A DNA stretch of 64,000 nt from Heterodontus francisci. Lineage: Eukaryota. The stretch spans positions 66,706,862-66,770,861 of the forward strand of contig NC_090399.1 in assembly GCF_036365525.1 (NCBI RefSeq), given 5' to 3'. A model generated the notes under the pieces. The model searched no databases and had not been told where the DNA came from. It saw only the letters and a list, made by a program, of their open reading frames with translations. This document shows positions 1-64,000 of this stretch, piece by piece; positions within the stretch are counted from its first letter, which is position 1; each line of letters starts with the position of its first letter. Position numbers and translations under genes: made by a program.

Positions 1-3000
1 CCTGTCTCTGTGTTTCAGTCTCTCACTCTGTCCAGAGCCCGAGTACTGGGAGAGACAGACACAGATACATGGAGCTGGGTGCAGGGTGGGGATTGTGTTG
101 GATTTATCTCTGTGTCTGGTTCAGTCTCTATTCTAACCCTGTCTCTGTGTTTCAGTCTCTCACTCTGTCCAGACCCCGAGTACTGGGAGAGACAGACACA
201 GATACACAAAGCTGGGTGCAGGGTGGGGATTGTGTTGGATTTATCTCTGTGTCTGGTTCAGTCTCTATTCTAACCCTGTCTCTGTGTTTCAGTCTCTCAC
301 TCTGTCCAGACCCCGAGTACTGGGAGAGACAGACACAGATACACAGAGCTGGGTGCAGGGTGGGGATTATGTTGGATTTATTTCTGTGTCTGGTTCAGTC
401 TCTATTCTAACCCTGTCTCTGTGTTTCAGTCTCTCACTGTGTCTAGACCCCGAGTACTGGGAGAGACAGACACAGATACACAGAGCTGGGTGCAGGGTGG
501 GGATTGTGTTGGATTTATCTCTGTGTCTGGTTCAGTCTCTATTCTCACCCTGTCTCTGTGTTTCAGTCTCTCACTCTGTCCAGAGCCCGAGTACTGGGAG
601 AGAGACACACAGATACACAGAGCTGAGTGCAGGGTGGGGATTGTGTTGCATTTATTTCTGTGTCTGGTTCAGTCTCTAATCTATTCCTGTCTCTGGGTTT
701 CAGTCTCTCACTGTGTCTAGACCCCGAGTACTGGGAGAGACAGACACAGATACACAGAGCTGGGTGCAGGGTGGGGATTGTGTTGCATTTATTTCTGTGT
801 CTGGTTCAGTCTCTATTCTAACCCTGTCTCTGTGTTTCAGACTCTCACTGTGTCCAGACACCGAGTACTGGGAGAGACAGACACAGATACACAGAGCTGG
901 GTGCGGGGTGGGGATTGTGTTGGGATTTATTTGAATGTCTGGTTCAGTCTCTATTCTAACCCTGTCTCTGTGTTTCAGTCTCTCACTCTGTCCAGAACCC
1001 GAGTTCTGGGAGAGACTGACACAGATACATGGAGGTGGGTGCAGGGTGGGGATTGTGTTGGGATTTATTTCTATGTCTGGTTCAGTCTCTATTCTAACCC
1101 TGTCTCTGTGTTTCAGTCTCTCACTGTGTCTAGACCCCGAGTACTGGGAGAGACAGACACAGATACACAGAGCTGGGTGCAGGGTGGGGATTGTGTTGCA
1201 TTTATTTCTGTGTCTGGTTCAGTCTCTATTCTAACCCTGTCTCTGTGTTTCAGTCTCTCACTGTGTCTAGACCCCGAGTACTGGGAGAGACAGACACAGA
1301 TACACAGAGCTGGGTGCAGGGTGAGGATTGTGTTGCATTTATTTCTGTGTCTGGTTCAGTCTCTATTCTAACCCTGTCTCTGTGTTTCAGTCTCTCACTG
1401 TGTCTCGACCCCGAGTACTGGGAGAGACAGACACAGATACACGGAGCGGGGTGCAGGGTGGTGATTGTGTTGGATTTATTTCTGTGTCTGTTTCAGTCTC
1501 TATTCTAACCCTGTCTCTGTGTTTCAGTCTCTCACTCTGTCCAGACCCCGAGTACTGGGAGAGACAGACACAGATACACAGAGCTGGGTGCAGAGTGGGG
1601 ATTGTGTTGGATTTATTTCTATGTCTGGTTCAGTCTCTATTCTCACCCTGTCTCTGTGTTTCAGTCTCTCACTCTGTCCAGAGCCCGAGTACTGGGAGAG
1701 ACAGACACAGATACACGGAGCTGGGTGCAGGGTGGGGATTGTGTTGCATTTATTTCTGTGTCTGGTTCAGTCTCTAATCTATTCCTGTCTCTGGGTTACA
1801 GTCTCTCACTCTGTCCAGACCCCGAGTACTGGGAGAGACAGACACAGATACACAGAGCTGGGTGCAGGGTGGGGATTGTGTTGGATTTATTTCTATGTCT
1901 GGTTCAGTCTCTATTCTAACCCTGTCTCTGTGTTTCAGTCTCTCACTGTGTCTAGACCCCGAGTACTGGGAGAGACAGACACAGATACACAGAGCTGGGT
2001 GCAGGGTGGGGATTGTGTTGGATTTATTTCTCTGTCTGTTTCAGTCTCTATTCTAACCCTGTCTCAGTGTTTCAGTCTCTCACTGTGTCTAGACCCCGAG
2101 TACTGGGAGAGACAGACACAGATACACAGAGCTGGGTGCAGGGTGGGGATTGTGTTGGATTTATTTCTCTGTCTGTTTCAGTCTCTATTCTAACCCTGTC
2201 TCTGTGTTTCATTCTCTCACTGTGTCTAGACCCCGAGTACTGGGAGAGACAGACACAGATACACAGAGCTGGGTGCAGGGTGGGGATTGTGTTGGATTTA
2301 TTTCTATGTCTGGTTCAGTCTCTATTCTAACCCTGTCTCTGTGTTTCAGTCTCTCACTGTGTCTAGACCCCGAGTACTGGGAGAGACAGACACTGATACA
2401 CAGAGCTGGGTGCAGGGTGGGGATTGTGTTGGATTTATTTCTATGTCTGGTTCAGTCTCTATTCTAACCCTGTCTCTGTGTTTCAGTCTCTCACTCTGTC
2501 CAGACCCCGAGTACTGGGAGAGACAGACACAGATACACAGAGCTGGGTGCAGAGTGGGGATTGTGTTGGATTTATTTCTATGTCTGGTTCAGTCTCTATT
2601 CTCACCCTGTCTCTGTGTTTCAGTCTCTCACTCTGTCCAGAGCCCGAGTACTGGGAGAGACAGACACAGATACATGGAGCTGGGTGCAGGGTGGGGATTG
2701 TGTTGGATTTATCTCTGTGTCTGGTTCAGTCTCTATTCTAACCCTGTCTCTGTGTTTCAGTCTCTCACTCTGTCCAGACCCCGAGTACTGGGAGAGACAG
2801 ACACAGATACACAGAGCTGGGTGCAGGGTGGGGATTGTGTTGGATTTATCTCTGTGTCTGGTTCAGTCTCTATTCTAACCCTGTCTCTGTGTTTCAGTCT
2901 CTCACTCTGTCCAGACCCCGAGTACTGGGAGAGACAGACACAGATACACAGAGCTGGGTGCAGGGTGGGGATTGTGTTGGATTTATTTCTGTGTCTGGTT

Positions 3001-6000
3001 CAGTCTCTATTCTAACCCTGTCTCTGTGTTTCAGTCTCTCACTGTGTCTAGACCCCGAGTACTGGGAGAGACAGACACAGATACACAGAGCTGGGTGCAG
3101 GGTGGGGATTGTGTTGGATTTATCTCTGTGTCTGGTTCAGTCTCTATTCTCACCCTGTCTCTGTGTTTCAGTCTCTCACTCTGTCCAGAGCCCGAGTACT
3201 GGGAGAGAGACACACAGATACACAGAGCTGAGTGCAGGGTGGGGATTGTGTTGCATTTATTTCTGTGTCTGGTTCAGTCTGTATTCTAACCCTGTCTCTG
3301 TGTTTCAGTCTCTCACTGTGTCCAGTCCCTGAGTACTGGGAGAGACAGACACTGATACACAGAGCTGGGTGCAGGGTGGGGATTGTGTTGTATTTATTTC
3401 TGTGTCTGGTTCAGTCTCTATTCTAACCCTGTCTCTGTGTTTCAGTCTCTCACTGTGTCTAGACCCCGAGTACTGGGAGAGACAGACACAGATACACAGA
3501 GCTGGGTGCAGGGTGGGGATTGTGTTGGATTTATTTCTATGTCTGGTTCAGTCTCTATTCTCACCCTGTCTCTGTGTTTCAGTCTCTCACTCTGTCCAGA
3601 GCCCGAGTACTGGGAGAGACAGACACAGATACACAGAGCTTTGTGCAGGGTGGGGATTGTGTTGGATTTATTTCTCTGTCTGGTTCAGTCTGTATTCTAA
3701 CCCTGTCTCTGTGTTTCAGTCTCTCACTGTGTCCAGACCCCGAGTACTGGGAGAGACAGACACTGATACACTGAGCTGGGTGCAGGGTGGGGATTGTGTT
3801 GGATTTATTTCTGTGTCTGGTTCAGTCTCTATTCTAACCCTGTCTCTGTGTTTCAGTCTCTCACTGTGTCCAGACCCCGAGTACTGGGAGAGACAGACAC
3901 AGATACACAGAGCTGGGTGCAGGGTGGGGATTCTGTTGGGATTTATTTGAATGTCTGGTTCAGTCTCTATTCTAACCCTGTCTCTGTGTTTCATTCTCTC
4001 ACTGTGTCTTGACCTCGAGTACTGGGAGAGACAGACACTGATACACAGAGCTGGGTGCAGGGTGGGGATTGTGTTGGATTTATTTCTATGCCTGGTTCAG
4101 TCTCTATTCTAACCCTGTCTCTGTGTTTCAGACTCTCACTGTGTCTAGACACCGAGTACTGGGAGAGACAGACACAGATACACAGAGCTGGGTGCAGGGT
4201 GGGGATTGTGTTGGGATTTATTTGAATGTCTGGTTCAGTCTCTATTCTAACCCTGTCTCTGTGTTTCAGTCTCTCACTGTGTCAAGACCCCGAGTACTGG
4301 GAGAGACAGACACAGATACACGGAGCTGGGTGCAGGGTGGGGATTCGGTTGGGATTTATTTGAATGTCTGGTTCAGTCTCTATTCTAACCCTGTCTCTGT
4401 GTTTCAGTCTCTCACTGTGTCTAGACCCCGAGTACTGGGAGAGACAGACACAGATACACAGAGCTGGGTGCAGGGTGGGGATTGTGTTGCATTTATTTCT
4501 GTGTCTGGTTCAGTCTCTATTCTAACCCTGTCTTTGTGTTTCAGTCTCTCACTGTGTCCAGACCCCGAGTACTGGGAGAGACAGACACAGATACCCAGAG
4601 CTGGGTGCAGGGTGGGGATTGTGTTGGATTTATTTCTCTGTCTGCCTCAGTCTCTATTGTAACCCTTTCTTTGTGTTTCAGTCTCTCACTGTGTCTAGAC
4701 CCCGAGTACTGGGAGAGACAGACACAGATACACAGAGCTGGGTGCAGGGTGGGGATTGTGTTGCATTTATTTCTGTGTCTGGTTCAGTCTCTAATCTATT
4801 CCTGTCTCTGGGTTTCAGTCTCTCACTGTGTCTAGACCCCGAGTACTGGGAGAGACAGACACAGATACACAGAGCTGGGTGCAGGGTGGGGATTGTGTTG
4901 CATTTATTTCTGTGTCTGGTTCAGTCTCTAATCTATTCCTGTCTCTGGGTTTCAGTCTCTCACTGTGTCTAGACCCCGAGTACTGGGAGAGACAGACACA
5001 GATACACAGAGCTGGGTGCAGGGTGGGGATTGTGTTGGGATTTATTTGAATGTCTGGTTCAGTCTCTATTCTAACCCTGTCTCTGTGTTTCAGTCTCTCA
5101 CTCTGTCCAGAACCCGAGTACTGGGAGAGACAGACACAGATACACGGAGCGGGGTGCAGGGTGGTGATTGTGTTGGATTTATTTCTGTGTCTGTTTCAGT
5201 CTCTATTCTAACCCTGTCTCTGTGTTTCAGTCTCTCACTCTGTCCAGACCCCGAGTACTGGGAGAGACAGACACAGATACACAGAGCAGGGTGCAGAGTG
5301 GGGATTGTGTTGGATTTATTTCTATGTCTGGTTCAGTCTCTATTCTCACCCTGTCTCTGTGTTTCAGTCTCTCACTCTGTCCAGAGCCCGAGTACTGGGA
5401 GAGACAGACACAGATACACGGAGCTGGGTGCAGGGTGGGGATTGTGTTGCATTTATTTCTGTGTCTGGTTCAGTCTCTAATCTATTCCTGTCTCTGGGTT
5501 TCAGTCTCTCACTCTGTCCAGAGCCCGAGTACTGGGAGAGACAGACACAGATACACAGAGCTGGGTGCAGGGTGGGGATTGTGTCGGATTTATTTCTGTG
5601 TCTGGTTCAGTCTCTATTCTAACCCTGTCTCTGTGTTTCAGTCTCTCACTCTGTCCAGACCCCGAGTACTGGGAGAGACAGACACAGATACACAGAGCTG
5701 GGTGCAGAGTGGGGATTGTGTTGGATTTATTTCTATGTCTGGTTCAGTCTCTATTCTCACCCTGTCTCTGTGTTTCAGTCTCTCACTCTGTCCAGAGCCC
5801 GAGTACTGGGAGAGACAGACACAGATACACGGAGCTGGGTGCAGGGTGGGGATTGTGTTGCATTTATTTCTGTGTCTGGTTCAGTCTCTAATCTATTCCT
5901 GTCTCTGGGTTTCAGTCTCTCACTCTGTCCAGAGCCCGAGTACTGAGAGAGACAGACACAGATACACAGAGCTGGGTGCAGGGTGGGGATTGTGTTGGAT

Positions 6001-9000
6001 TTATTTCTCTGTCTGGTTCAGTCTCTATTCTAACCCTGTCTCTGTGTTTCACTCTCTCACTGTGTCCAGACCCCGAGTACTGGGAGAGACAGACACTGAT
6101 ACACAGAGCTGGGTGCAGGGTGGGGATTGTGTTGGATTTATTTCTATGTCTGGTTCAGTCTCTATTCTCACCCTGTCTCTGTGTTTCAGTCTCTCAATCT
6201 GTCCAGACCCCGAGTACTGGGAGAGACAGACACAGATACACAGAGCTGGGTGCAGGGTGGGGATTGTGTTGGATTTATTTCTGTGTCTGGTTCAGTCTCT
6301 ATTCTAACCCTGTCTCTGTGTTTCACTCTCTCACTGTGTCCAGACCCCGAGTACTGGGAGAGACAGACACAGATACACAGAGCTGGGTGCAGGGTGGGGA
6401 TTGTGTTTGATTTATTTCTCTGTCTGGTTCAGTCTGTATTCTAACCCTGTCTCTGTGTTTCAGTCTCTCACTCTGACCAGAGCCCGAGTATTGGGAGAGA
6501 CAGACACAGATACACAGAGCTGGGTGCAGGGTGGGGATTGTGTTGGATTTATTTCTGTGTCTGGTTCAGTCTCTATTCTAACCCTGTCTCTGTGTTTCAG
6601 TCTCTCACTCTGTCCAGACCCCGAGTACTGGGAGAGACAGACACAGATACACAAAGCTGGGTGCAGGGTGGGGATTGTGTTGGATTTATCTCTGTGTCTG
6701 GTTCAGTCTCTATTCTAACCCTGTCTCTGTGTTTCAGTCTCTCACTCTGTCCAGACCCCGAGTACTGGGAGAGACAGACACAGATACACAGAGCTGAGTG
6801 CAGGGTGGGGATTGTGTTGGATTTATTTCTGTGTCTGGTTCAGTCTCTATTCTAACCCTGTCTCTGTGTTTCAGTCTCTCACTGTGTCTAGACCCCGAGT
6901 ACTGGGAGAGACAGACACAGATACACAGAGCTGGGTGCAGGGTGGGGAATTTGTTGGATTTATCTCTGTGTCTGGTTCAGTCTCTATTCTCACCCTGTCT
7001 CTGTGTTTCAGTCTCTCACTCTGTCCAGAGCCCGAGTACTGGGAGAGAGACACACAGATACACAGAGCTGAGTGCAGGGTGGGGATTGTGTTGCATTTAT
7101 TTCTGTGTCTGGTTCAGTCTGTATTCTAACCCTGTCTCTGTGTTTCAGTCTCTCACTGTGTCCAGTCCCTGAGTACTGGGAGAGACAGACACAGATACAC
7201 AGAGCTGGGTGCAGGGTGGGGATTGTGTTGTATTTATTTCTATGTGTGGTTCAGTCTGTATTCTAACCCTGTCTCTGTGTTTCAGTCTCTCACTGTGTCT
7301 AGACCCCGAGTACTGGGAGAGACAGACACAGATACACAGAGCTGGGTGCAGGGTGGGGATTGTGTTGGATTTATTTCTATGTCTGGTTCAGTCTCTATTC
7401 TAACCCTGTCTCTGTGTTTCACTCTCTCACTGTGTCCAGACCCCGAGTACTGGGAGAGACAGACACAGATACACAGAGCTGGGTGCAGGGTGGGGATTGT
7501 GTTGGATTTATTTCTATGTCTGGTTCAGTCTCTATTCTCACCCTGTCTCTGTGTTTCAGTCTCTCACTCTGTCCAGAGCCCGAGTACTGGGAGAGACAGA
7601 CACTGATACACAGAGCTTTGTGCAGGGTGGGGATTGTGTTGGATTTATTTCTCTGTCTGGTTCAGTCTGTATTCTAACCCTGTCTCTGTGTTTCAGTCTC
7701 TCACTGTGTCTAGACCCCGAGTACTGGGAGAGACAGACACTGATACACAGAGCTGGGTGCAGGGTGGGGATTGTGTTGGATTTATTTCTGTGTCTGGTTC
7801 AGTCTCTATTCTAACCCTGTCTCTGTGTTTCAGTCTCTCACTGTGTCCAGACCCCGAGTACTGGGAGAGACAGACACAGATACACAGAGCTGGGTGCAGG
7901 GTGGGGATTGTGTTGGGATTTATTTGAATGTCTGGTTCAGTCTCTATTCTAACCCTGTCTCTGTGTTTCATTCTCTCACTGTGTCTTGACCCCGAGTACT
8001 GGGAGAGACAGACACTGATACACAGAGCTGGGTGCAGGGTGGGGATTGTGTTGGATTTATTTCTATGCCTGGTTCAGTCTCTATTCTAACCCTGTCTCTG
8101 TGTTTCAGACTCTCACTGTGCCTAGACACCGAGTACTGGGAGAGACAGACACACATACACAGAGCTGGGTGCAGGGTGGGGATTGTGTTGGGATTTATTT
8201 GAATGTCTGGTTCAGTCTCTATTCTAACCCTGTCTCTGTGTTTCAGTCTCTCACTGTGTCAAGACCCCGAGTACTGGGAGAGACAGACACAGATACACGG
8301 AGCTGGGTGCAGGGTGGGGATTCGGTTGGGATTTATTTGAATGTCTGGTTCAGTCTCTATTCTAACCCTGTCTCTGTGTTTCAGTCTCTCACTGTGTCTA
8401 GACCCCGAGTACTGGGAGAGACAGACACAGATACACAGAGCTGGGTGCAGGGTGCAGATTGTGTTGGATTTATTTCTATGTCTGGTTCAGTCTCTATTCT
8501 GACCCTGTCTCTGTGTTTCATTCTCTCACTGTGTCCAGACCCCGAGTACTGGGAGAGACAGACACAGATACACAGAGCTGGGTGCAGGGTGGGGATTGTG
8601 TTGGATTTATTTCTATGTCTGGTTCAGTCTCTATTCTAACCCTGTCTCTGTGTTTCAGTCTCTCACTGTGTCTAGACCCCGAGTACTGGGAGGGACAGAC
8701 ACAGATACACAGAGCTGGGTGCAGGGTGGGGATTGTGTTGGATTTATTTCTATGTCTGGTTCAGTCTCTATTCTAACCCTGTCTCTGTGTTTCAGTCTCT
8801 CACTGTGTCTGGACCCCGAATACTGGGAGAGACAGACACAGATACACAGAGCTGGGTGCAGGGTGGGGATTGTGTTGGATTTATTTCTATGTCTGGTTCA
8901 GTCTCTATTCTAACCCTGTCTCTGTGTTTCAGTCTCTCACTGTGTCTAGACCCCGAGTACTGGGAGAGACAGACACAGATACACAGAGCTGGGTGCAGGG

Positions 9001-12000
9001 TGGGGATTGTGTTGGATTTATTTCTATGTCTGGTTCAGTCTCTATTCTAACCCTGTCTCTGTGTTTCAGTCTCTCACTGTGTCTAGACCCCGAGTACTGG
9101 GAGAGACAGACACTGATACACAGAGCTGGGTGCAGGGTGGGGATTGTGTTGGATTTATTTCTGTGTCTGGTTCAGTCTCTATTCTAACCCTGTCTCTGTG
9201 TTTCAGTCTCTCACTGTGTATGGACCCCGAGTACTGGGAGAGACAGACACAGATACACAGAGCTGGGTGCAGGGTGGGGATTGTGTTGGATTTATTTCTG
9301 TGTCTGGTTCTGTCTCTATTCTAACCCTGTCTCTGTGTTTCAGTCTCTCACTGTGTCTAGACCCCGAGTACTGGGAGAGACAGACACAGATACACAGAGC
9401 TGGGTGCAGGGTGGGGATTCGGTTGGGATTTATTTGAATGTCTGGTTCAGTCTGTATTCTAACCCTGTCTCTGTGTTTCAGTCTCTCACTCTGTCCAGAC
9501 CCCGAGTACTGGGAGAGACAGACACAGATACACAGAGCTGGGTGCAGGGTGGGGATTGTGTTGGGATTTATTTGAATGTCTGGTTCAGTCTCTATTCTAA
9601 CCCTGTCTCTGTGTTTCAGTCTCTCACTGTGTCTAGACCCCGAGTACTGGGAGAGACAGACACAGATACACAGAGCTGGGTGCAGGGTGGGGATTGTGTT
9701 GGATTTATTTCTATGCCTGGTTCAGTCTCTATTCTAACCCTGTCTCTGTGTTTCAGACTCTCACTGTGTCAAGACCCCGAGTACTGGGAGAGACAGACAC
9801 AGATACACAGAGCTGGGTGCAGGGTGGGGATTCGGTTGGGATTTATTTGAATGTCTGGTTCAGTCTCTATTCTAACCCTGTCTCTGTGTTTCAGTCTCTC
9901 ACTGTGTCCAGACCCCGAGTACTGGGAGAGACAGACACAGATACACAGAGCTGGGTGCAGGGTGGGGATTGTGTTGGATTTATTTCTATGTCTGGTTCAG
10001 TCTCTATTCTAACCCTGTCTCTGTGTTTCAGTCTCTCACTGTGTCTAGACCCCGAGTACTGGGAGAGACAGACACAGATACACAGAGCTGGGTGCAGGGT
10101 GGGGATTGTGTTGGATTTATTTCTATGTCTGGTTCAGTCTCTATTCTAACCCTGTCTCTGTGTTTCAGTCTCTCACTCTGTCCAGACCCCGAGTACTGGG
10201 AGAGACAGACACTGATACACAGAGCTGGGTGCAGGGTGGGGATTGTGTTGGATTTATTTCTGTGTCTGGTTCAGTCTCTATTCTAACCCTGTCTCTGTGT
10301 TTCAGTCTCTCACTGTGTCTAGACCCCGAGTACTGGGAGAGACAGACACTGATACACAGAGCTGGGTGCAGGGTGGGGATTGTGTTGGATTTATTTCTGT
10401 GTCTGGTTCAGTCTCTATTCTAACCCTGTCTCTGTGTTTCAGTCTCTCACTGTGTATGGACCCCGAGTACTGGGAGAGACAGACACAGATACACAGAGCT
10501 GGGTGCAGGGTGGGGATTGTGTTGGATTTATTTCTGTGTCTGGTTCTGTCTCTATTCTAACCCTGTCTCTGTGTTTCAGTCTCTCACTGTGTCTAGACCC
10601 CGAGTACTGGGAGAGACAGACACAGATACACAGAGCTGGGTGCAGGGTGGGGATTCGGTTGGGATTTATTTGAATGTCTGTTTCAGTCTGTATTCTAACC
10701 CTGTCTCTGTGTTTCAGTCTCTCACTCTGTCCAGACCCCGAGTACTGGGAGAGACAGACACAGATACACAGAGCTGGGTGCAGGGTGGGGATTGTGTTGG
10801 GATTTATTTGAATGTCTGGTTCAGTCTCTATTCTAACCCTGTCTCTGTGTTTCAGTCTCTCACTGTGTCTAGACCCCGAGTACTGGGAGAGACAGACACA
10901 GATACACAGAGCTGGGTGCAGGGTGGGGATTGTGTTGGATTTATTTCTATGCCTGGTTCAGTCTCTATTCAAACCCTGTCTCTGTGTTTCAGACTCTCAC
11001 TGTGTCAAGACCCCGAGTACTGGGAGAGACAGACACAGATACACAGAGCTGGGTGCAGGGTGGGGATTCGGTTGGGATTTATTTGAATGTCTGGTTCAGT
11101 CTCTATTCTACCCCTGTCTCTGTGTTTCAGACTCTCACTGTGCCTAGACACCGAGTACTGGGAGAGACAGACACTGATACACAGAGCTGGGTGCAGGGTG
11201 GGGATTGTGTTGGATTTATTTCTATGTCTGGTTCAGTCTCTATTCTAACCCTGTCTCTGTGTTTCAGTCTCTCACTCTGTCCAGACCCCGAGTACTGGGA
11301 GAGACAGACACAGATACACAGAGCTGGGTGCAGGGTGGGGATTGTGTTGGATTTATTTCTATGTCTGGTTCAGTCTCTATTCTAACCCTGTCTCTGTGTT
11401 TCAGTCTCTCGCTCTGTCCAGACCCCGAGTACTGGGAGAGACAGACACTGATACACAGAGCTGGGTGCAGGGTGGGGATTGTGTTGGATTTATTTCTGTG
11501 TCTGGTTCAGTCTCTATTCTAACCCTGTCTCTGTGTTTCAGTCTCTCACTGTGTCTAGACCCCGAGTACTGGGAGAGACAGACACTGATACACAGAGCTG
11601 GGTGCAGGGTGGGGATTGTGTTGGATTTATTTCTGTGTCTGGTTCAGTCTCTATTCTAACCCTGTCTCTGTGTTTCAGTCTCTCACTGTGTCTAGACCCC
11701 GAGTACTGGGAGAGACAGACACAGATACACAGAGCTGGGTGCAGGGTGGGGATTGTGTTGGGATTTATTTGAATGTCTGGTTCAGTCTCTATTCTAACCC
11801 TGTCTCTGTGTTTCATTCTCTCACTGTGTCTAGACCCCGAGTACTGGGAGAGACAGACACAGATACACGGAGCTGGGTGCAGGGTGGGGATTGTGTTGGA
11901 TTTATTTCTATGTCTGGTTCAGTCTCTATTCTAACCCTGTCTCTGTGTTTCATTCTCTCACTGTGTCTAGACCCCGAGTACTGGGAGAGACAGACACAGA

Positions 12001-14819: not shown

Positions 14820-14968
14820 GTGAGTGTCTCTCAGTATACCCGGGATCAGATCTGGGAATGGGGGGGGTGCGGTGTGGATGGGGATCGGGAATCAGATCTG
14901 GGAATGGGGGATGTGGATGGGGATTGAATGATCCAGTGATCTGGGATGTGAAACTCTCTCATTAACAG
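14820..14968 (+). other. Short GT-AG intron (149 bp) between the alpha1 and alpha2 exons
   Basis: Begins GTGAGT and ends ttaacAG. Splicing joins the two exons in frame (ST-G-IHT). Confidence 0.95.
14842..14925 (+). repeat. Two-copy imperfect direct repeat (~40-45 bp) in the short intron
   Basis: gggatcagatctgggaatggggg...tgtggatggggatc is followed by gggaatcagatctgggaatgggggatgtggatggggatt. Confidence 0.8.
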
Positions 14969-15241: not shown

Positions 15242-15319
15242 GTGAGTGAGAGTGAGGAGAATGAGTGAGGATGAGTGAATGAGGGAAGGGACAGTGACTG
15301 AGGAGGAGACAGTGGAGGT

Positions 15320-38818: not shown

Positions 38819-38837
38819 GTAAGTCTTTCTCCCACAG

Positions 38838-53800: not shown

Positions 53801-56800
53801 TGAGGATCCAGTGTCACTACAGGAGGGCGGGTCAATGCTGAGCTGTGTGAGGATCCAGTCTCTCTACAGGAGGGAGGGAGGGTCAGTGCTGAGCTGTGTG
53901 AGGATCCAGTCTCACTACAGGAGGGAGGGAGTGTCAGTGCTGAGCTGTGTGAGGATCCAGTCTCACGACAGGAGGGAGGGAGGGTCAGTGCTGAGCTGTG
54001 TGAGGATCCAGTCTCACTACAGGAGGGAGGGTCAGTGCTGAGCTGTGTGAGGATCCAGTCTCACTACAGGAGGGAGGGTCAGTGCTGAGCTGTGTGAAGA
54101 TCCATTCTCACTTCAGGAGGGAGGGTCAGTGCTGAGCTGCGTGAGGATCCAGTCTCACGACAGCAGGGAGGGAGGGTCAGTGCAGAGCTGTGTGAGGATC
54201 CAGTTTCACTGCAGGAGGGAGGATCAGTGCTGAGCTGTGTGAGGATCCAGTCTGACTACAGGAGGGAGGGTCAGTGCTGAGCTGTGTGAGGATCCAGTCT
54301 CACTACAGGAGGGAGGGTCAGTGCTGAGCTGTGTGAGGATCCAGTCTCACTCCAAGAGGGAGGGTCAGTGCTGAGCTGTGTGAGGATCCAGTCTGACTAC
54401 AGGAGGGAGGGTCAGTGCTGAGCTGTGTGAGGATCCAGTCTCACTACAGGAGGGAGGGTCAGTGCTGAGCTGTGTGAGGATCCAGTCTCACTACAGGAGG
54501 GAGGGTCAGTGCTGGGCTGTGTGAGGATCCAGTCTCACTACAGGAGGCAGGGAGGGTCAGTGCTGAGCTGTGCGAGGATCCAGTCTCACTACAGGAGGGA
54601 GGGTCAGTGCTGGGCTGTGTGAGGATCCAGTCTCACTACAGGAGGCAGGGAGGGTCAGTGCTGAGCTGTGTGACGATCCAGTCTCACTACAGGAGGGAGG
54701 GTCAGTGCTGAGCTGTGTGAGGATCCAGTCTCACTTTTGGTGGGAGGGTCAGTGCTGAGCTGTGTGAGGATCCAGTCTGACTACAGGAGGGAGGGAGGGT
54801 CAGTGTTGAGCTGTGTGAGGATCCAGTCTCACTACAGGAGGGAGGGTCAGTGCTGAGCTGTGTGAGGATCCAGTCTCACTACAGGAGGGAGGGTCAGTGC
54901 TGAGCTGTGTGAGGTTCCAGTCTCACTCCAGGAGGGAGCGAGGGTCAGTGCTGAGCTGTGTGAGGATCCAGTCTCACTCCAGGAGGGAGGGTCAGTGCTG
55001 AGCTGTGTGACGATCCATTCTCACTACAGGAGGGAGGGTCAGTGCTGAGCTGTGTGACGATCCAGTCTCACTACAGGAGGGAGGGTCAGTGCTGAGCTGT
55101 GTGAGGATCCAGTCTCACTGCAGGAGGGAGGGTCAGTGCTGAGCTGTGTGACGATCCAGTCTCACTACAGGAGGGAGGGTCAGTGCTGAGCTGTGTGAGG
55201 ATCCAGTCTCACTGCAGGAGGGAGGGTCAGTGCTGAGCTGTGTGACGATCCAGTCTCACTACAGGAGGGAGGGTCAGTGCTGAGCTGTGTGAGGATCCAG
55301 TCTCACTACAGGAGGGAGGGTCAGTGCTGAGCTGTGTGAGGATCCAGTCTCACTACAGGAGGGAGGATCAGTGCTGAGCTGTGTGACGATCCAGTCTCAC
55401 TACAGGAGGGAGGGTCAGTGCTGAGCTGTGTGAGGATCCAGTCTCACTACAGGAGGGAGGGTCAGTGCTGAGCTGTGTGAGGATCCAGTCTGACTACAGG
55501 AGGGAGGGAGGGTCAGTGTTGAGCTGTGTGAGGATCCAGTCTCACGACAGGAGGGAGGGTCAGTGCTGAGCTGTGTGAGGATCCAGTCTCACTACAGGAG
55601 CGAGGGAGGGTCAGTGCAGAGCTGTGTGTGGATCCAGTCTCACTACAGGAGGGAGGGTCAGTGCTGAGCAGTGTGAGGATCCAGTCTCACTACAGGAGGG
55701 AGGGAGGGTCAGTGCTGAGCTGTGTGAAGATCCATTCTCACTACAGGAGGGAGGGTCAGTGCTGAGCTGCGTGAGGATCCAGTCTCACTACAGGAGGGAG
55801 GATCAGTGCTGAGCTGTGTGAGGATCCAGTCTCACTACAGGAGGGAGGGTCAGTGCTGAACTGTGTGAGGATCCAGTCTCACTACAGGAGGGAGGGTCAG
55901 TGCTGGGCTGTGTGAGGATCCAGTCTCACTACAGGAGGGAGGGAGGGTCAGTGCTGAGCTGTGTGAGGATCCAGTCTCACTACAGGAGGGCGGGTCAGTG
56001 CTGAGCTGTGTGAGGATCAAGTCTCACTACAGGAGGCAGGGTCAGTGCTGAGCTGTGTGAGGATCCAGTCTCTCTACAGGAGGGAGGGAGGGTCAGTGCT
56101 GAGCTGTGTGAGGATCCAGTCTCACGACAGGAGGGAGAGAGGGTCAGTGCTGAGCTGTGTGAGGATCCAGTCTCACTACAGGAGGGAGGGTCAGTGCTGA
56201 GCTGTGTGAGGATCCAGTCTCACTGCAGGGCGGAGGGTCAGTGCTGAGCTGTGTGAGGATCCAGTCTCACAACAGGAGGCAGGGAGAGTCAGTGCTGAGC
56301 TGTGTGAGGATCCAGTCTCACTACAGGAGGGAGGGTCAGTGCTGAGCTGTGTGAGGATCCAGTCTCACTCCAGGAGGGAGGGAGGGTCAGTGCTGAGCTG
56401 TGTGAGGATCCAGTCTCACTGCAGGAGGGAGGGTCAGTGCTGAGCTGCGTGAGGATCCAGTCTCACTACAGGAGGGAGGATCAGTGCTGAGCTGTGTGAG
56501 GATCCAGTCTCACTACAGGAGGGAGGGTCAGTGCTGAACTGTGTGAGGATCCAGTCTCACTACAGGAGGGAGGGTCAGTGCTGGGCTGTGTGAGGATCCA
56601 GTCTCACTACAGGAGGGAGGGAGGGTCAGTGCTGAGCTGTGTGAGGATCCAGTCTCACTACAGGAGGGCGGGTCAGTGCTGAGCTGTGTGAGGATCAAGT
56701 CTCACTACAGGAGGCAGGGTCAGTGCTGAGCTGTGTGAGGATCCAGTCTCTCTACAGGAGGGAGGGAGGGTCAGTGCTGAGCTGTGTGAGGATCCAGTCT

Positions 56801-59800
56801 CACGACAGGAGGGAGAGAGGGTCAGTGCTGAGCTGTGTGAGGATCCAGTCTCACTACAGGAGGGAGGGTCAGTGCTGAGCTGTGTGAGGATCCAGTCTCA
56901 CTGCAGGGCGGAGGGTCAGTGCTGAGCTGTGTGAGGATCCAGTCTCACAACAGGAGGCAGGGAGAGTCAGTGCTGAGCTGTGTGAGGATCCAGTCTCACT
57001 ACAGGAGGGAGGGTCAGTGCTGAGCTGTGTGAGGATCCAGTCTCACTCCAGGAGGGAGGGAGGGTCAGTGCTGAGCTGTGTGAGGATCCAGTCTCACTGC
57101 AGGAGGGAGGGTCAGTGCTGAGCTGTGTGAGGATCCAGTCTCACTACAGCAGGGAGGGTCAGTGCTGAGCTGTGTGAGGATCCAGTCTCACTACAGGAGG
57201 GAGGGTCAGTGCTGAGCTGTGTGAGGATCCACTCTCACTACAGGAGGGAGAGTCAGTGCTGAGCTGTGTGAGGATCCAGTCTCACCGCAGGAGGGAGGGT
57301 CAGTGCTGAGCTGTGTGAGGATCCAGTCTCACCGCAGGAGGGAGGGTCAGTGCTGAGCTGTGTGAGGATCCAGTCTCACCGCAGGAGGGAGAGTCAGTGC
57401 TGAGCTGTGTGAGGATCCAGTCTCACGACAGGAGGGAGGGAGGGTCAGTGCTGAGCTGTGTGAGGATCCAGTCTCACTGCAGGAGGGAGAGTGAGTGCTG
57501 AGCTGTGTCAGGATCCAGTCTCACTACAGGAGGGAGGGAGGGTCAGTGCTGAGATGTGTGAGGATCCAGTCTCACTACAGGAGGGAGGGAGCGTCGGTGC
57601 TGAGCTGTGTGAGGATCCACTCTCACTACAGGAGGGAGAGTGAGTGCTGAGCTGTGTGAGGATCCAGTTTCACTACAGGAGGGAGGGTCAGTGCTGAGCT
57701 GTGCGAGGATCCACTCTCACTACAGGAGGGAGGGTCAGTGCTGAGCTGTGTGAGGATCCAGTCTCTCTACAGGAGGGAGGGAGGGTCAGTGCTGAGCTGT
57801 GTGACGATCCAGTCTCACTACAGGAGGGAGGGTCAGTGCTGAGCTGTGTGAGGATCCAGTCTCACTGCAGGAGGGCGGGTCAGTGCTCAGCTGTGTGACG
57901 ATCCAGTCTCACTACAGGAGGGAGGGCAGTGCTGAGCTGTGTGAGGATCCAGTCTCACTACAGGAGGGAGGGTCAGTGCTGAGCTGTGTGAGGATCCAGT
58001 CTCACTACAGGAGGGAGGATCAGTGCTGAACTGTGTGACGATCCAGTCTCACTACAGGAGGGAGGGTCAGTGCTGAGCTGTGTGAGGATCCAGTCTCACT
58101 ACAGGAGGGAGGGTCAGTGCTGAGCTGTGTGAGGATCCAGTCTGACAACGTGGAGGGAGGGAGGGTCAGTGTTGAGCTGTGTGAGGATCCAGTCTCACGA
58201 CAGGAGGGAGGGTCAGTGCTGGGCTGTGTGAGGATCCAGTCTCACTACAGGAGGGAGGGAGGGTCAGTGCTGAGCTGTGTGAAGATCCATTCTCACTACA
58301 GGAGGGAGGGTCAGTGCTGAGCTGCGTGAGGATCCAGTCTCACTACAGGAGGGAGGATCAGTGCTGAGCTGTGTGAGGATCCAGTCTCACGACAGGAGGG
58401 AGGGTCAGTGCTGAGCTGTGTGAGGATCCAGTCTCACTACAGGAGGGAGGGTCAGTGCTGGGCTGTGTGAGGATCCAGTCTCACTACAGAAGGGAGGGAG
58501 GGTCAGTGCTGAGCTGTGTGAGGATCCAGTCTCACTACAGGAGGGCGGGTCAGTGCTGAGCTGTGTGAGGATCCAGTCTCACTACAGGAGGCAGGGTCAG
58601 TGCTGAGCTGTGTGAGGATCCAGTCTCTCTACAGGAGGGAGGGAGGGTCAGTGCTGAGCTGTGTGAGGATCCAGTCTCACGACAGGAGGGAGAGAGGGTC
58701 AGTGCTGAGCTGTGTGAGGATCCAGTCTCACTACAGGAGGGAGGGTCAGTGCTGAGCTGTGTGAGGATCCAGTCTCACTGCAGGAGGGAGGGTCAGTGCT
58801 GAGCTGTGTGAGGATCCAGTCTCACGACAGGAGGGAGGGTCAGTGCTGAGCTGTGTGAGGATCCAGTCTCACAACAGGAGGGCGGGTCAGTGCTGAGCTG
58901 TGTGAGGATCCAGTCTCACTACAGGAGGCAGGGTCAGTGCTGAGCTGTGTGAGGATCCAGTCTCTCTACAGGAGGGAGGGAGGGTCAGTGCTGAGCTGTG
59001 TGAGGATCCAGTCTCACGACAGGAGGTAGAGAGGGTCAGTGCTGAGCTGTGTGAGGATCCAGTCTCAATACAGGAGGGAGGTCAGTGCTGAGCTGTGTGA
59101 GGATCCAGTCTCACTGCAGGAGGGAGGGTCAGTGCTGAGCTGTGTGAGGATCCAGTCTCACGACAGGAGGGAGGGTCAGTGCTGAGCTGTGTGAGGATCC
59201 AGTCTCACTGCAGGGCGGAGGGTCAGTGCTGAGCTGTGTGAGGATCCAGTCTCACAACAGGAGGCAGGGAGAGTCAGTGCTGAGCTGTGTGAGGATCCAG
59301 TCTCACTACAGGAGGGAGGGTCAGTGCTGAGCTGTGTGAGGATCCAGTCTCACTCCAGGAGGGAGGGAGGGTCAGTGCTGAGCTGTGTGAGGATCCAGTC
59401 TCACTACAGCAGGGAGGGTCAGTGCTGAGCTGTGTGAGGATCCACTCTCCCTACAGGAGGGAGAGTCAGTGCTGAGCTGTGTGAGGATCCAGTCTCACCG
59501 CAGGAGGGAGGGTCAGTGCTGAGCTGTGTGAGGATCCAGTCTCACCGCAGGAGGGAGGGTCAGTGCTGAGCTGTGTGAGGATCCAGTCTCACCGCAGGAG
59601 GGAGAGTCAGTGCTGAGCTGTGTGAGGATCCAGTCTCACCGCAGGAGGGAGAGTCAGTGCTGAGCTGTGTGAGGATCCAGTCTCACGACAGGAGGGAGGG
59701 AGGGTCAGTGCTGAGCTGTGTGAGGATCCAGTCTCACTGCAGGAGGGAGAGTGAGTGCTGAGCTGTGTGAGGATCCAGTCTCACTACAGGAGGGAGGGAG

Positions 59801-62800
59801 GGTCAGTGCTGAGATGTGTGAGGATCCAGTCTGACTCCAGGAGGGAGGGAGCGTCGGTGCTGAGCTGTGTGAGGATCCAGTCTCACTGCAGGAGGGAGAG
59901 TGAGTGCTGAGCTGTGTGAGGATCCAGTCTCACTACAGGAGGGAGGGAGAGTCAGTGCTGAGCTGTGTGAGGATCCAGTTTCACTGCAGGAGGGAGGGTC
60001 AGTGCTGAGCTGTGTGAGGATCCAGTCTCACCGCAGGAGGGAGAGTCAGTGCTGAGCTGTGTGAGGATCCAGTCTCACTACAGGAGGGAGGATCAGTGCT
60101 GAGCTGTGTGACGATCCAGTCTCACTACAGGAGGGAGGGTCAGTGCTGAGCTGTGTGAGGATCCAGTCTCACTACAGGAGGGAGGGTCAGTGCTGAGCTG
60201 TGTGAGGATCCAGTCTGACAACGTGGAGGGAGGGAGGGTCAGTGTTGAGCTGTGTGAGGATCCAGTCTCACGACAGGAGGGAGGGTCAGTGCTGGGCTGT
60301 GTGAGGATCCAGTCTCACTACAGGAGGGAGGGAGGGTCAGTGCTGAGCTGTGTGAAGATCCATTCTCACTACAGGAGGGAGGGTCAGTGCTGAGCTGCGT
60401 GAGGATCCAGTCTCACTACAGGAGGGAGGATCAGTGCTGAGCTGTGTGAGGATCCAGTCTCACGACAGGAGGGAGGGTCAGTGCTGAGCTGTGTGAGGAT
60501 CCAGTCTCACTACAGGAGGGAGGGTCAGTGCTGGGCTGTGTGAGGATCCAGTCTCACTACAGAAGGGAGGGAGGGTCAGTGCTGAGCTGTGTGAGGATCC
60601 AGTCTCACTACAGGAGGGCGGGTCAGTGCTGAGCTGTGTGAGGATCCAGTCTCACTACAGGAGGCAGGGTCAGTGCTGAGCTGTGTGAGGATCCAGTCTC
60701 TCTACAGGAGGGAGGGAGGGTCAGTGCTGAGCTGTGTGAGGATCCAGTCTCACGACAGGAGGGAGAGAGGGTCAGTGCTGAGCTGTGTGAGGATCCAGTC
60801 TCACTACAGGAGGGAGGGTCAGTGCTGAGCTGTGTGAGGATCCAGTCTCACTGCAGGAGGGAGGGTCAGTGCTGAGCTGTGTGAGGATCCAGTCTCACTA
60901 CAGGAGGGAGGGTCAGTGCTGAGCTGTGTGAGGATCCAGTCTCACAACAGGAGGCAGGGAGAGTCAGTGCTGAGCTGTGTGAGGATCCAGTCTCACTACA
61001 GGAGGGAGGGTCAGTGCTGAGCTGTGTGAGGATCCAGTCTCACTCCAGGAGGGAGGGAGGGTCAGTGCTGAGCTGTGTGAGGATCCAGTCTCACTGCAGG
61101 AGGGAGGGTCAGTGCTGAGCTGTGTGAGGATCCAGTCTCACTACAGCAGAGAGGGTCAGTGCTGAGCTGTGTGAGGATCCACTCTCACTACAGGAGGGAG
61201 AGTCAGTGCTGAGCTGTGTGAGGATCCAGTCTCACCGCAGGAGGGAGGGTCAGTGCTGAGCTGTGTGAGGATCCAGTCTCACCGCAGGAGGGAGGGTCAG
61301 TGCTGAGCTGTGTGAGGATCCAGTCTCACCGCAGGAGGGAGAGTCAGTGCTGAGCTGTGTGAGGATCCAGTCTCACCGCAGGAGGGAGAGTCAGTGCTGA
61401 GCTGTGTGAGGATCCAGTCTCACGACAGGAGGGAGGGAGGGTCAGTGCTGAGCTGTGTGAGGATCCAGTCTCACTGCAGGAGGGAGAGTGAGTGCTGAGC
61501 TGTGTGAGGATCCAGTCTCACTACAGGAGGGAGGGAGGGTCAGTGCTGAGATGTGTGAGGATCCAGTCTGACTCCAGGAGGGAGGGAGAGTCAGTGCTGA
61601 GCTGTGTGAGGATCCAGTTTCACTGCAGGAGGGAGGGTCAGTGCTGAGCTGTGCGAGGATCCACTCTCACTACAGGAGGGAGGGTCAGTGCTGAGCTGTG
61701 TGAGGATCCAGTCTCACTACAGGAGGGAGGGAGGGTCAGTGTTGAGCTGTGTGAGGATCCAGTCTCACTGCAGGAGGGAGAGTCAGTGCTGAGCTGTGTG
61801 AGGATCCAGTCTCACTACAGGAGGGAGGGAGGGTCAGTGCTGAGATGTGTGAGGATCCAGTCTGACTCCAAGAGGGAGGGAGAGTCAGTGCTGAGCTGTG
61901 TGAGGATCCAGTTTCACTGCAGGAGGGAGGGTCAGTGCTGAGCTGTGCGAGGATCCACTCTCACTACAGGAGGGAGGGTCAGTGCTGAGCTGTGTGAGGA
62001 TCCAGTCTCACTACAGGAGGGAGGGAGGGTCAGTGTTGAGCTGTGTGAGTATCCAGTCTCACTGCAGGAGGGAGAGTCAGTGCTGAGCTGTGTGAGGATC
62101 CAGTCTCACTACAGGAGGGAGGGAGGGTCAGTGCTGAGCTGTGTGAGGATCCAGTCTCACTGCAGGAGGGAGAGTCAGTGTTGAGCTGTGTGAGGATCCA
62201 GTCTCACTACAGGAGGGAGGGTCAGTGCTGAGCTGTGCGAGGATCCAGTCTCACTGCAGGAGGGAGGGAGCGTCAGTGCGAAGCTATGTGAGGATCCAGT
62301 CTCACTACAGGAGGGAGGGAGGGTCAGTGCTGAACTGAGTGAGGATCCAGTCTCACTAGAGGAGGGAGAGTCAGTGCTGAGCTGTCTGAGGATCCAGTCT
62401 CACTACAAGAGGGAGGGTCAGTGCTGAGCTCTGTGAGGATCCAGGCTCACTACAGGAGGCAGGGAGGGTCACTGCTGAGCTGTGTGTGGATCCAGTCTCA
62501 CTACAAGACGGAGGGTCAGTGCTGAGCTGTGTGAGGATCCAGTCTCACTACAGGAGGGAGGGAGGGTCTGTGCTGAGCTGTGTGAGGATCCAGGATCACC
62601 ACAGGAGGGAGGGACGGTCAGTGCTGAGCTGTGTGAGGATCCAGTCTCACGACAGGAGGGAGGGTCAGTGCTGAGCTGTGTGAGGATCCAGTCTCACGAC
62701 AGGAGGGAGGGTCAGTGCTGAGCTGTGTGAGGATCCAGTCTCACTACAGGAGCGAGGGAGGGTCAGTGCTGAGCTGTGTGAGGATCCAGTCTCACGACAG

Positions 62801-64000
62801 GAGGGAGGGTCAGTGCTGAGCAGTGTGAGGTTCCAGTCTCACTACAGGAGGGAGGGAGGGTCAGTGCTGAGCTGTGTGAAGATCCATTCTCACTAAAGGA
62901 GGGAGGGTCAGTGCTGAGCTGCGTGAGGATCCGGTCTCACTACAGGAGGGTGGGTCAGTGCTGAGCTGTGTGAGGATCCAGTTTCACTACAGGAGGGAGG
63001 ATCAGTGCTGAGCTGTGTGAGGATCCAGTCTGACTACAGGAGGGAGGGTCAGTGCTGAGCTGTGTGAGGATCCAGTCTCACTACAGGAGGGAGGGTCAGT
63101 GCTGAGCTGTGTGAGGATCCAGTCTCACTCCAGGAGGGAGGGTCAGTGCTGAGCTGTGAGACGATCCAGTCTCACTACAGGAGGGAGGGTCAGTGCTGAG
63201 CTGTGTGAGGATCCAGTCTGACTACAGGAGGGAGGGTCAGTGCTGAGCTGTGTGAGGATCCAGTCTCACTACAGGAGGGAGGGTCAGTGCTGAGCTGTAT
63301 GAGGATCCAGTCTCACTACAGGAGGGAGGGTCAGTGTAGGGCTGTGTGAGGATCCAGTCTCACTACAGGAGGGAGGGAGGGTCAGTGCTGAGCTGTGTGA
63401 GGATCCAGTCTCACTACAGGAGGGAGGGAGGGTCAGTGCTGAGCTGTGTGAGGATCCAGTCTCACTACAGGAGGGCGGGTCAATGCTGAGCTGTGTGAGG
63501 ATCCAGTCTCACGACAGGAGGGAGGGAGGGTCAGTGCTGAGCTGTGTGAGGATCCAGTCTCAATACAGGAGGGAGCGTCAGTGCTGAGCTGTGTGAGGAT
63601 CCAGTTTCACTGCAGGAGGGAGGGTCAGTGCTGAGCTGTGTGAGGATCCAGTCTCACCGCAGGAGGGAGAGTCAGTGCTGAGCTGTGTGAGGATCCAGTC
63701 TCACTGCAGGAGGGAGGGTCAGTGCTGAGCTGTGTGAGGATCCAGTCTCACTACAGGAGGCAGGGTCAGTGCTGAGCTGTGTGAGGATCCAGTCTCACTA
63801 CAGAAGGGAGGGAGGGTCAGTGCTGAGCTGTGTGAGGATCCAGTCTCACTACAGGAGGGCGGGTCAGTGCTGAGCTGTGTGAGGATCCAGTCTCACTACA
63901 GGAGGCAGGGTCAGTGCTGAGCTGTGTGAGGATCCAGTCTCTCTACAGGAGGGAGGGAGGGTCAGTGCTGAGCTGTGTGAGGATCCAGTCTCACGACAGG
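38838..64000 (+). repeat. 47/51-bp minisatellite (consensus GCTGAGCTGTGTGAGGATCCAGTCTCACTACAGGAGGGAGGGTCAGT, with or without an extra GGAG; about 520 units), filling the intron after alpha3 and continuing past the right edge
   Basis: Uninterrupted tandem units start about 19 nt after the alpha3 donor. Most units carry a BamHI site (GGATCC). I saw no unique sequence up to 64000. Confidence 0.98.

Follow-up and report, generated by a model that had tools for sequence, protein, structure and literature searches.

The 64,000-nt stretch of horn shark (Heterodontus francisci) DNA analysed here, hereafter the window, covers the middle of an MHC class I gene of the UAA lineage that is expressed and already has a public annotation. 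Three long introns of this gene are occupied almost entirely by three different tandem arrays. We consider it likely that this gene carries three unrelated arrays, one of them derived from a class I exon-2 border, and that the arrays are most probably neutral passengers. As a rule, MHC class I genes are compact; in this gene, introns 1, 3 and 4 are inflated to >14.5 kb, 23.3 kb and >25 kb, respectively, while intron 2 stays short. The gene itself is not new, since a RefSeq annotation already exists.

The coding anatomy proposed in the initial annotation (798 nt, or ~1.2% of the window) has been confirmed by exon borders and Pfam domains. Three intact exons (261 + 273 + 264 nt, 1.25% of the 64 kb) all have GT-AG borders in phase 1, with alpha1 and alpha2 matching Pfam PF00129 on separate exons (profile positions 2-88 and 93-179, respectively), followed by a membrane-proximal Ig C1-set domain in alpha3 (PF07654, 8.5e-14). 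When the exons were searched one by one rather than as a joined spliced model, the public protein P0174 was 100% identical on all three, with alpha1 at residues 18-103, alpha2 at 105-194 and alpha3 at 196-282. P0174 is the 343-aa RefSeq entry 'class I histocompatibility antigen, F10 alpha chain-like [Heterodontus francisci]', a member of the UAA lineage. Among class I relatives gathered by a representative search and by a query with a public Triakis protein, alpha2, alpha3 and the transmembrane region (TM) show 84-95% identity to the horn shark UAA-type sequences P0171 and P0175 (O19481), and alpha1 is 66% identical to Triakis UAA. Of the eight conserved residues that bind the peptide termini (Y7, Y59, Y/R84, T143, K146, W147, Y159 and Y171), seven are kept. 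The gene shares domain order and phase-1 exons with classical-type class I sequences of the shark UAA lineage (for example Triakis scyllium O46840; H. francisci cDNAs O19481 and O19480), but differs from them at position 84, which is Q here and R in all five other aligned shark sequences.

The view that the reading frame is intact and the gene functional is supported by the complete RefSeq match and by spliced contigs from runs that were guessed to be RNA. A 282-nt contig of run X5, mismatch-free on alpha1, joins position 14818 to 14968 with GT..AG ends and thus spans the alpha1-alpha2 joint. For the other two joints, a contig of run X6 carries the leader letters GGTCTCTG directly 5' of position 14556, and a contig from organism B runs past 15241 into 30 letters identical to the sequence from 38555 onward, these two contigs being from this gene or from close relatives. 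In the likely RNA runs, the depth over the 137-bp unit of intron 1, with all copies summed, is ~8-12 vs 66-121 on the exons of this gene, which fits intronic RNA or DNA carry-over.

Each long intron holds its own array, beginning at or near the exon edge, as had been claimed and as both TRF and unique 15-mer bins now bear out (Table 1). TRF recovered three arrays, with units of 137 bp, 30 bp and 47/98 bp, and no 200-nt bin outside the exon islands reaches 60% unique 15-mers. In intron 3, 23,129 of 23,313 nt (99%) belong to the 30-bp array. No relatedness was found among the three units, no higher-order repeat structure is evident (lag identity only decays with register drift), and a search of the whole window against Rfam gave no match.

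Table 1. Exons, introns and tandem arrays along the window (all on the + strand).
Feature	Position	Strand	Details
137-bp satellite, 3' part of intron 1	1..14558	+	TRF; ~106 copies; runs off window start
Class I alpha1-helix relic, last-unit example	14438..14500	+	63 nt, DPEYWERQT.IHRAGCRVGIV; in every unit
Exon 2 (alpha1)	14559..14819	+	261 nt, phase 1; Pfam MHC_I 4.6e-19
Intron 2	14820..14968	+	149 nt, repeat-free
Exon 3 (alpha2)	14969..15241	+	273 nt, phase 1; Pfam MHC_I 9.5e-24
True donor G|GTGAGT, then degenerate edge of 30-bp array	15242..15319	+	only GGTGAGT in intron 3
30-bp G/A-rich array (GAACTGAGAGTGAGTGAACGAGTGAGGGGG)	15320..38448	+	~790 copies; TRF
Unique tail of intron 3	38449..38554	+	106 nt; ACTAAC branch point, pyrimidine tract, acceptor
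Exon 4 (alpha3, Ig C1-set)	38555..38818	+	264 nt, phase 1; Pfam C1-set 8.5e-14
Donor G|GTAAGT and 18 unique nt, then 47/51-bp array from 38837	38819..64000	+	TRF

The 137-bp array provides the clearest link between a satellite and its host gene. It comprises 106 TRF copies with 95% matches (span 1-14567), with copy identities of 94-99% and length variants of 137, 138, 106 and 168 bp occurring among them. Within each unit, a pseudo-exon is preceded by the elements of a splice acceptor (CTAAC branch point, pyrimidine tract and CAG). In terms of source, the unit joins the tail of intron 1 to 8-9 nt from the start of alpha1 and to a ~63-nt alpha1-helix relic (DPEYWERQTQI...). The array runs into the true acceptor and overlaps the first 8-9 exon bases, with bases 2-9 of exon 2 (CTCTCACT) common to the exon and the satellite unit. 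The real 23-nt acceptor is present in 72 exact copies within the array, in which neither GTGAGT nor GTAAGT occurs. In a DNA run, the summed contig depth over the unit is ~280-860 vs ~3 on single-copy exons, and although contig depth is not copy number, as the tool itself cautions, this ratio suggests ~10^2 copies genome-wide, largely covered by the at least 106 copies found here.

That this unit aligns to the alpha1 acceptor together with an alpha1 coding fragment, as first proposed, has held up against shuffled sequences, in PDB matches and in tblastn searches with reversed controls. In nucleotide local alignments to the gene's own alpha1, the observed score was reached by 1/1000 and 4/1000 shuffles. 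When the 24-aa translation of the relic was compared with PDB by phmmer, all 60 of the matches listed were MHC class I chains, mostly at mature residues ~55-72 (80-96 in precursor or fusion chains), and in tblastn searches at least 20 bits were obtained for 187 of 278 proteins from the class I searches, vs 9 of 278 reversed controls. Pfam returned no match for the 24-aa relic because the peptide is too short. The relic evolves neutrally: no coding constraint was found on it, and variation among copies is without codon-position bias. Its PEYWERQTQI segment is closer to canonical UAA-type alpha1 than to the corresponding LDYWEEETQK of the gene's own exon, and therefore the source appears to be an ancestral or paralogous exon. 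Judged from these alignments, the 137-bp unit preserves the remains of an exon-2 border from a class I gene; its source may be a paralogue, with the array then arriving by unequal crossover.

The other two arrays show a weaker relation to the exons, or none. Degenerate copies of the 30-mer begin at the alpha2 donor, the array (80-82% TRF matches) ends 106 nt before the alpha3 acceptor, and its sense strand has a GC skew of +0.7 over 23 kb. Intron 3 contains 562 runs of at least 4 G and 189 GTGAGT hexamers, at which the -1 base is A in all except the true donor and one other. The proposed alignment of the 30-bp unit to the alpha2 end plus its donor reaches p ~0.016-0.024, a weak result, when the test is anchored at the junction, where the exonic part is only the 9-nt GAACTGAGA; against anywhere in the alpha2 exon, the unit aligns no better than shuffles (456/1000), and it gave no protein-level signal against class I proteins. 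Depth over the first 30-mer copies corresponds to ~3,000-3,700 single-copy equivalents vs ~790 copies here, and therefore the 30-mer family, or look-alike simple repeats, probably also occurs elsewhere. The array in intron 4 starts 18 nt after the alpha3 donor and has ~520 copies of a 47/51-bp unit with 89-90% matches, occupying at least 25 kb before it runs off the window end. The weak alignment of this unit to the alpha3 end that had been reported was not reproduced, its score of 14 lying below the shuffle mean of 15.6, and nothing above controls was obtained when it was compared with the flanks of alpha3, with the other two units or with class I proteins, exon-5 region included.

Taken against the proposal that satellites have arisen from the gene's own exon and junction sequences, these results retain the 137-bp array, with an ancestral or paralogous exon as its source, leave the 30-bp array marginal and remove the 47-bp array. 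The further proposal that such satellites arose repeatedly at junctions lacks support, since only one of three arrays qualifies, the 30-bp array being marginal and the 47-bp array failing. For the 137-bp array, we infer a partial tandem duplication in a class I gene, of a segment that would have begun ~58 nt before the exon-2 acceptor and extended into alpha1, after which an internal deletion would have cut the exon part down to its first 8-9 nt and ~63 nt of helix sequence. Unequal exchange or replication slippage would then have amplified the 137-bp unit so formed, with the most 3' copy presumably still providing the acceptor that the intact exon uses. Ordinary intronic minisatellite expansion, in effect passive bloat, would account for the 30-bp and 47-bp arrays, and the 30-mer may have been seeded in GT/GA-rich, donor-proximal sequence. 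Such arrays would be tolerated because minimal splice signals are kept, because the ~100 decoy acceptors of intron 1 precede pseudo-exons without a usable donor, so that no exon definition would take place, and because decoy GTGAGT motifs in intron 3 lack a G at -1.

Three other explanations of the arrays, and one broader proposal, have to be weighed against the neutral reading. The arrays could instead serve as modulators of splicing or expression, through hairpin-masked decoy acceptors, through arrays of G runs and U1-binding GTGAGT motifs by which the upstream donor would be protected or strengthened, through R-loops on the G-rich non-template strand, or through transcriptional delay. Features that would suit such roles are plentiful, as they include the exact decoy acceptors of intron 1, the GTGAGT hexamers, G runs and GC skew of intron 3, and the lack of any AATAAA or ATTAAA hexamer in 63 kb of sense-strand array. 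The 137-bp unit also folds into a hairpin in which the relic base-pairs with the pyrimidine tract and AG (z -2.2 to -2.6 vs -0.6 at the real acceptor), and this structure over a decoy acceptor, slightly better than chance, could hint at selection. However, every such feature follows automatically from amplifying one short unit, the z-scores of the hairpin are modest and the relic is neutral in its evolution, and we consider a modulatory role unlikely. A selected role as recombination platforms, in which satellites shared by paralogues or alleles would allow single exons, or alpha1 and alpha2 as one cassette, to pass between them by unequal crossover, would agree with the position of alpha1-alpha2 as a 683-bp cassette between one array of >14 kb and another of >23 kb, with a relic that is more like paralogues than the gene's own exon, and with the mosaic make-up of horn shark UAA-type proteins, in which alpha1 is very divergent and alpha3 and TM are nearly identical. 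The sharpest identity break, however, falls between alpha1 and alpha2 (63% to 84% vs P0171; 39% to 85% vs P0175), at the 149-bp intron rather than at any of the giant introns. The three arrays are moreover mutually unrelated, and the 137-bp family looks low-copy, on the order of this one array. With this break and a relic free of coding constraint, the earlier suggestion of a platform for crossover or domain shuffling finds no support, and we rate it as quite improbable.

It could also be argued that the array lengths are assembly artefacts, over-expanded or mis-joined, and that the real introns are much shorter. The array lengths are those given by the assembly, and independent short contigs, probably from the same animal, show the exon-array junctions only; contigs over the window are short. 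Against this, the copies are heterogeneous (95%, 80-82% and 89-90% matches, with 47/51 and 137/138/106/168 variants) and would be well resolved by long accurate reads, the run contigs reproduce the exon-array junctions, and the RefSeq model spans these introns, all of which makes such an artefact very unlikely. Beyond this one gene, it may be proposed that in the horn shark antigen-receptor and MHC genes, in preference to others, lie within arrays that grew out of the genes' own signals (here splice acceptors and exon tips). The process would be directed at these loci, for instance tandem amplification linked to transcription or to breaks; decoy signals would arise by the hundred, alpha1 and alpha2 would be held together as one cassette with an array on either side, and recombination or expression of these genes would be affected. 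We hold this proposal to be improbable and prefer the reading of the arrays as neutral passengers of a working gene.

The initial annotation knew of no description of such an architecture, and targeted literature searches likewise found none; the cDNA-based shark class I literature, as searched, does not mention satellite-filled introns. Vertebrate intronic VNTRs and minisatellites, such as the 30-bp array in intron 3 of human CACNA1C, have units of tens of bp, extend over multiple kb within an expressed gene and probably arise by slippage or unequal exchange. The horn shark case differs from these in that a single gene has three of its introns filled to ~99% by three separate arrays, which reach up to its splice sites. 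A long intron is also known from classical class I genes (UBA) of salmonids, where a long intron 2 has been proposed to promote shuffling of alpha1 and alpha2 exons; in the shark gene, as opposed to UBA, alpha1 and alpha2 are separated by a short intron of 149 bp, and it is the introns beyond the peptide-binding cassette that are long.

A further likeness is to the Drosophila Y-linked genes kl-2, kl-3 and kl-5 (PMC6508621, PMC11207136), which likewise have small exons and introns that are nearly all tandem satellite and are transcribed and spliced out. Near-total satellite introns are thus common to both, while the megabase scale of the kl introns is not found in the shark gene. The kl introns consist of simple 5-10-bp satellites on a heterochromatic Y and are served by a dedicated germline expression programme, whereas the introns here are tens of kb in a vertebrate immune gene, with one unit taken from an exon border of the gene's own family. 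Within sharks, a passage of PMC1513397, citing Ohta 2002, describes GC-rich simple repeats in a nurse shark class I gene.

These findings mean that an expressed shark class I gene works with ~99% of three introns replaced by satellites. The ~100 copies of its own acceptor that lie upstream of the real one provide a natural test case for how the spliceosome ignores decoys in long repetitive introns, and the 137-bp unit illustrates cleanly how a satellite can originate at an exon border, keeping in it the fossil of an older or paralogous alpha1 helix. Should the MHC, Ig and TCR loci of this genome share the pattern, it would bear on immune-locus evolution in large shark genomes, and it would caution annotators against taking exon-like relics within satellites for genes.

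The three exons recovered in the window (table) sum to 798 nt of coding sequence (261+273+264), exactly the figure that the initial annotation had given, with canonical splice borders throughout; the anatomy is real. Pfam places C1-set on alpha3 (8.5e-14) and MHC_I on alpha1 (4.6e-19) and alpha2 (9.5e-24), which cover complementary halves of that profile. Intron 2 measures 149 nt and intron 3 measures 23,313 nt, and introns 1 and 4, which extend beyond the window, are longer than 14.5 kb and 25 kb, respectively. All but ~1.1 kb of the 64 kb is assigned by Tandem Repeats Finder to three tandem arrays.

Exons and tandem arrays of the class I gene, in window positions
Feature	Positions	Size or copies	Phase or matches	Borders (intron/exon, exon/intron)	Method
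Exon alpha1	14559-14819	261 nt	phase 1	...tttcag/AC, CCG/gtgagt	
Exon alpha2	14969-15241	273 nt	phase 1	...aacag/GG, CCG/gtgagt	
Exon alpha3	38555-38818	264 nt	phase 1	...ctcag/TT, ATG/gtaagt	
137-bp unit array	1-14567	106 copies	95% matches		Tandem Repeats Finder
30-bp unit array	15320-38448	~790 copies	80-82% matches		Tandem Repeats Finder
47-bp unit array, alternatively scored as 98-bp dimer (47+51)	38837-64000	~520 copies	89-90% matches		Tandem Repeats Finder

Exon translations were queried one at a time rather than as a joined model. Among protein representatives, alpha1 matches shark and ray class I proteins, the top single-domain match being the Triakis scyllium class I protein (66% identity), which as a query in turn returns several Heterodontus francisci proteins. 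The horn shark protein P0174, named 'class I histocompatibility antigen, F10 alpha chain-like' (343 aa), is a 100% match for all three exons (residues 18-103, 105-194 and 196-282), so that the gene is already publicly annotated with exactly these exon joins. Identity to the horn shark paralogue P0171 is 88% in the leader, 63% in alpha1, 84% in alpha2, 94% in alpha3 and 90% in the TM/cytoplasmic part, and identity to the cDNA-derived P0175 (O19481) is just 39% in alpha1, 85% in alpha2 and 95% in alpha3; by sequence, the gene belongs to the UAA lineage. Seven of the eight conserved residues that bind the peptide termini are kept. Position 84, which contacts the peptide C-terminus, is Q, where R stands in all 5 of the 5 other shark class I sequences aligned, and this residue may point to a changed F pocket or a non-classical gene. 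The Q lies within alpha1 residues MKQSNQS (window 14800-14812), and the gene shares the Cys in MCGCEL with the nurse shark structure chain.

The array borders are sharp shifts in base composition, with a sense-strand GC skew of about +0.1 in the 137-bp array, +0.7 in the 30-bp array and +0.34 in the 47-bp array, and a 15-mer uniqueness scan of the window confines unique sequence to 14.6-15.4 kb and 38.4-38.8 kb. Across the ~63 kb of intronic array (1-14558, 15242-38554 and 38819-64000) there is no transposon or other insert, no 200-nt bin with at least 60% unique 15-mers, and, in the sense orientation, no AATAAA or ATTAAA. That 63 kb of shark intron should be free of transposons suggests recent expansion or ongoing turnover of the arrays. 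The sense strand of the intron-3 array (15242-38554) is strongly G- and purine-rich, with an AT skew of +0.45 and 562 runs of at least four G, a composition that would favour R-loops and G-quadruplexes and that loosely resembles immunoglobulin switch regions. The 30-bp array is traversed on the minus strand by ORFs of 269-374 aa (14962-16243 and 37537-38346) whose products would be low-complexity repeats of the SLSVPPSLVHS type; such ORFs follow mechanically from the repeat and are no evidence of a gene.

In register with the real acceptor, the 137-bp consensus opens with TCTCTCACT, whose final 8 bases are alpha1 exon bases 2-9, followed by a short junction, a segment of ~63 nt reading DPEYWERQTQIHRAGCRVGIV, and ~58 nt ending in TTCTAACCCTGTCTCTGTGTTTCAG, which correspond to the real branch point, pyrimidine tract and acceptor. 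A class I origin of the middle segment, an alpha1-helix relic, is supported by three independent tests. Local alignment with alpha1 of the same gene, the first 10 nt being left out, gives a score of 29, which is equalled in 1 of 1000 and 4 of 1000 dinucleotide shuffles. The 24-aa translation of the segment, searched with phmmer against all PDB chains, has 105 matches, and each of the 60 listed matches is an MHC class I heavy chain; most align at mature residues ~55-72, and precursor or fusion chains at 80-96 (for example, DPEYWERQTGI in 7edo). In tblastn against the 137-bp unit, 187 of 278 proteins from the class I searches reach at least 20 bits (best 32), as opposed to 9 of 278 in the reversed-sequence control (best 23.1), with alignments that span unit nt 11-79, such as PDYWERQTQILRGAEQIGKV against PEYWERQTQIHRAGCRVGIV. 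The relic is nearer to the canonical UAA type, as in PEYWEQQTQI (P0226, a further horn shark class I protein), PDYWEQQTQI (P0171) and PDYWERQTQI (Triakis), than to the gene's own exon (LDYWEEETQK). Among 56 in-register copies, variation clusters at a few subfamily-defining sites and is not biased by codon position (0.011, 0.026 and 0.018 at positions 1-3), so the relic is not under coding constraint.

The sole exonic match of the 30-bp unit is the 9-nt GAACTGAGA at the alpha2 end, and over any exon position the unit aligns to alpha2 no better than shuffles do (456/1000). When the alignment is anchored on the junction (GAACTGAGA[cccg]GTGAGTGA..GAGTGAGG) and the exon tail is swapped, p is 0.024 with real exon 13-mers and 0.016 with random 13-mers; since there were three junctions and a free choice of criteria, these values make an origin from the alpha2 end and its donor suggestive at most. 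The 47-bp unit scores below the shuffle mean against alpha3, the alpha3 flanks and the other units. Neither unit has class I similarity at the protein level above reversed controls, and the 137-bp, 30-bp and 47-bp units show no relatedness to one another. The exon-border origin proposed in the initial annotation for the satellites thus stands for the 137-bp unit and is not borne out for the other two.

As the most likely mechanism, we infer a tandem duplication that had its two breakpoints ~58 nt ahead of the exon-2 acceptor and within alpha1, and that would leave the gene intact: the downstream duplicate would run on into the complete exon, the upstream duplicate would become a donor-less pseudo-exon, and internal deletion and unequal exchange would then give rise to the 137-bp unit and to an array whose last copy would still supply the working acceptor. 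The mismatch between relic and exon reflects either an exon that has since diverged or been converted, or an array acquired from a paralogue by unequal crossover. The 30-bp and 47-bp arrays look like passive minisatellite expansions.

In the 137-bp array the real 23-nt acceptor recurs in 72 exact copies and the motif TTTCAG 99 times, and GTGAGT and GTAAGT are absent, so the decoy acceptors of the array would have no downstream donor or exon definition. Intron 3 holds 189 GTGAGT hexamers, and GGTGAGT occurs just once, as the true donor. Decoys without a donor, a single GGTGAGT and the lack of AATAAA/ATTAAA may together account for a gene that still works. As RNA, every 137-bp unit (14395-14531) is predicted to fold into a hairpin in which the purine-rich relic is bound to the pyrimidine tract and AG by base pairing (z = -2.5, -2.6 and -2.2; 1-3 of 200 shuffles fold as well), and the real acceptor context (14532-14668) gives z = -0.6; the effect is modest.

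The leader-alpha1, alpha1-alpha2 and alpha2-alpha3 joins are each seen in contigs, from runs whose RNA status is a guess. A 282-nt contig of X5, a run on the animal that also gave the DNA runs, has zero mismatches over 14593-14818 and jumps 149 nt with GT..AG ends, and is the alpha1-alpha2 splice of exactly this gene. A contig of run X6, aligned from 14556, is preceded by GGTCTCTG and, with the shared CAG, reads ...GVSA/DSHS, which is the leader-alpha1 join of P0174 or P0171. Over 14559-15241, X5 and X6 also hold close paralogues (few letter differences) at 100-1000x the contig depth of this gene. In run X8, labelled as a different organism (organism B), a 696-nt contig is ~90% identical over alpha2 and runs beyond 15241, where its next 30 letters are identical to 38555 onward, the alpha2-alpha3 join. 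The exon-array junctions are reproduced by DNA-run contigs (407 nt at 14538-14944; 493 nt at 14995-15487). The mismatch-free contigs of this gene in X5 and X6 have depths of ~66-121, contig depth being a rough guide only, and it is probably a minor-expressed member of its family.

In the DNA run, where depth does not equal copy number, summed contig depth is ~280-860 on the 137-bp unit against ~3 on single-copy exon bins, or roughly 10^2 copies, for which the at least 106 copies of the window can largely account. The first consensus-like 30-mer copies reach depths of ~10,000-12,000, under the same limit on depth, which is several times the ~790 local copies, so that more of this family, or simple repeats that resemble it, are probably present elsewhere too. 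The organism B run contains the 137-bp unit as a collapsed 167-nt contig (137+30) with 3 differences, and a 292-nt contig that starts 30 nt before the acceptor and continues into an alpha1 exon of 91% identity (region 14392-14748). Because both the unit and the satellite-exon contig are shared, the junction probably predates the split from organism B.

It had also been suggested that the arrays serve as platforms for domain shuffling among paralogues or modulate splicing and expression. Shuffling mainly in the giant introns would be expected to place breaks in paralogue identity across them; the largest break instead lies at the 149-bp intron that separates alpha1 from alpha2, which argues against such a platform. 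A modulator role found no backing either, as only features expected of any amplified unit were seen. No description of such an architecture was found in the searchable literature, where the nearest remark is a passage on GC-rich simple repeats in a nurse shark class I gene (PMC1513397); gigantic introns filled with satellite are already known in Drosophila Y genes (PMC6508621). The gene is known and expressed, one of its three satellites is derived from an exon border, and neutral intron bloat is the best reading of the arrays.
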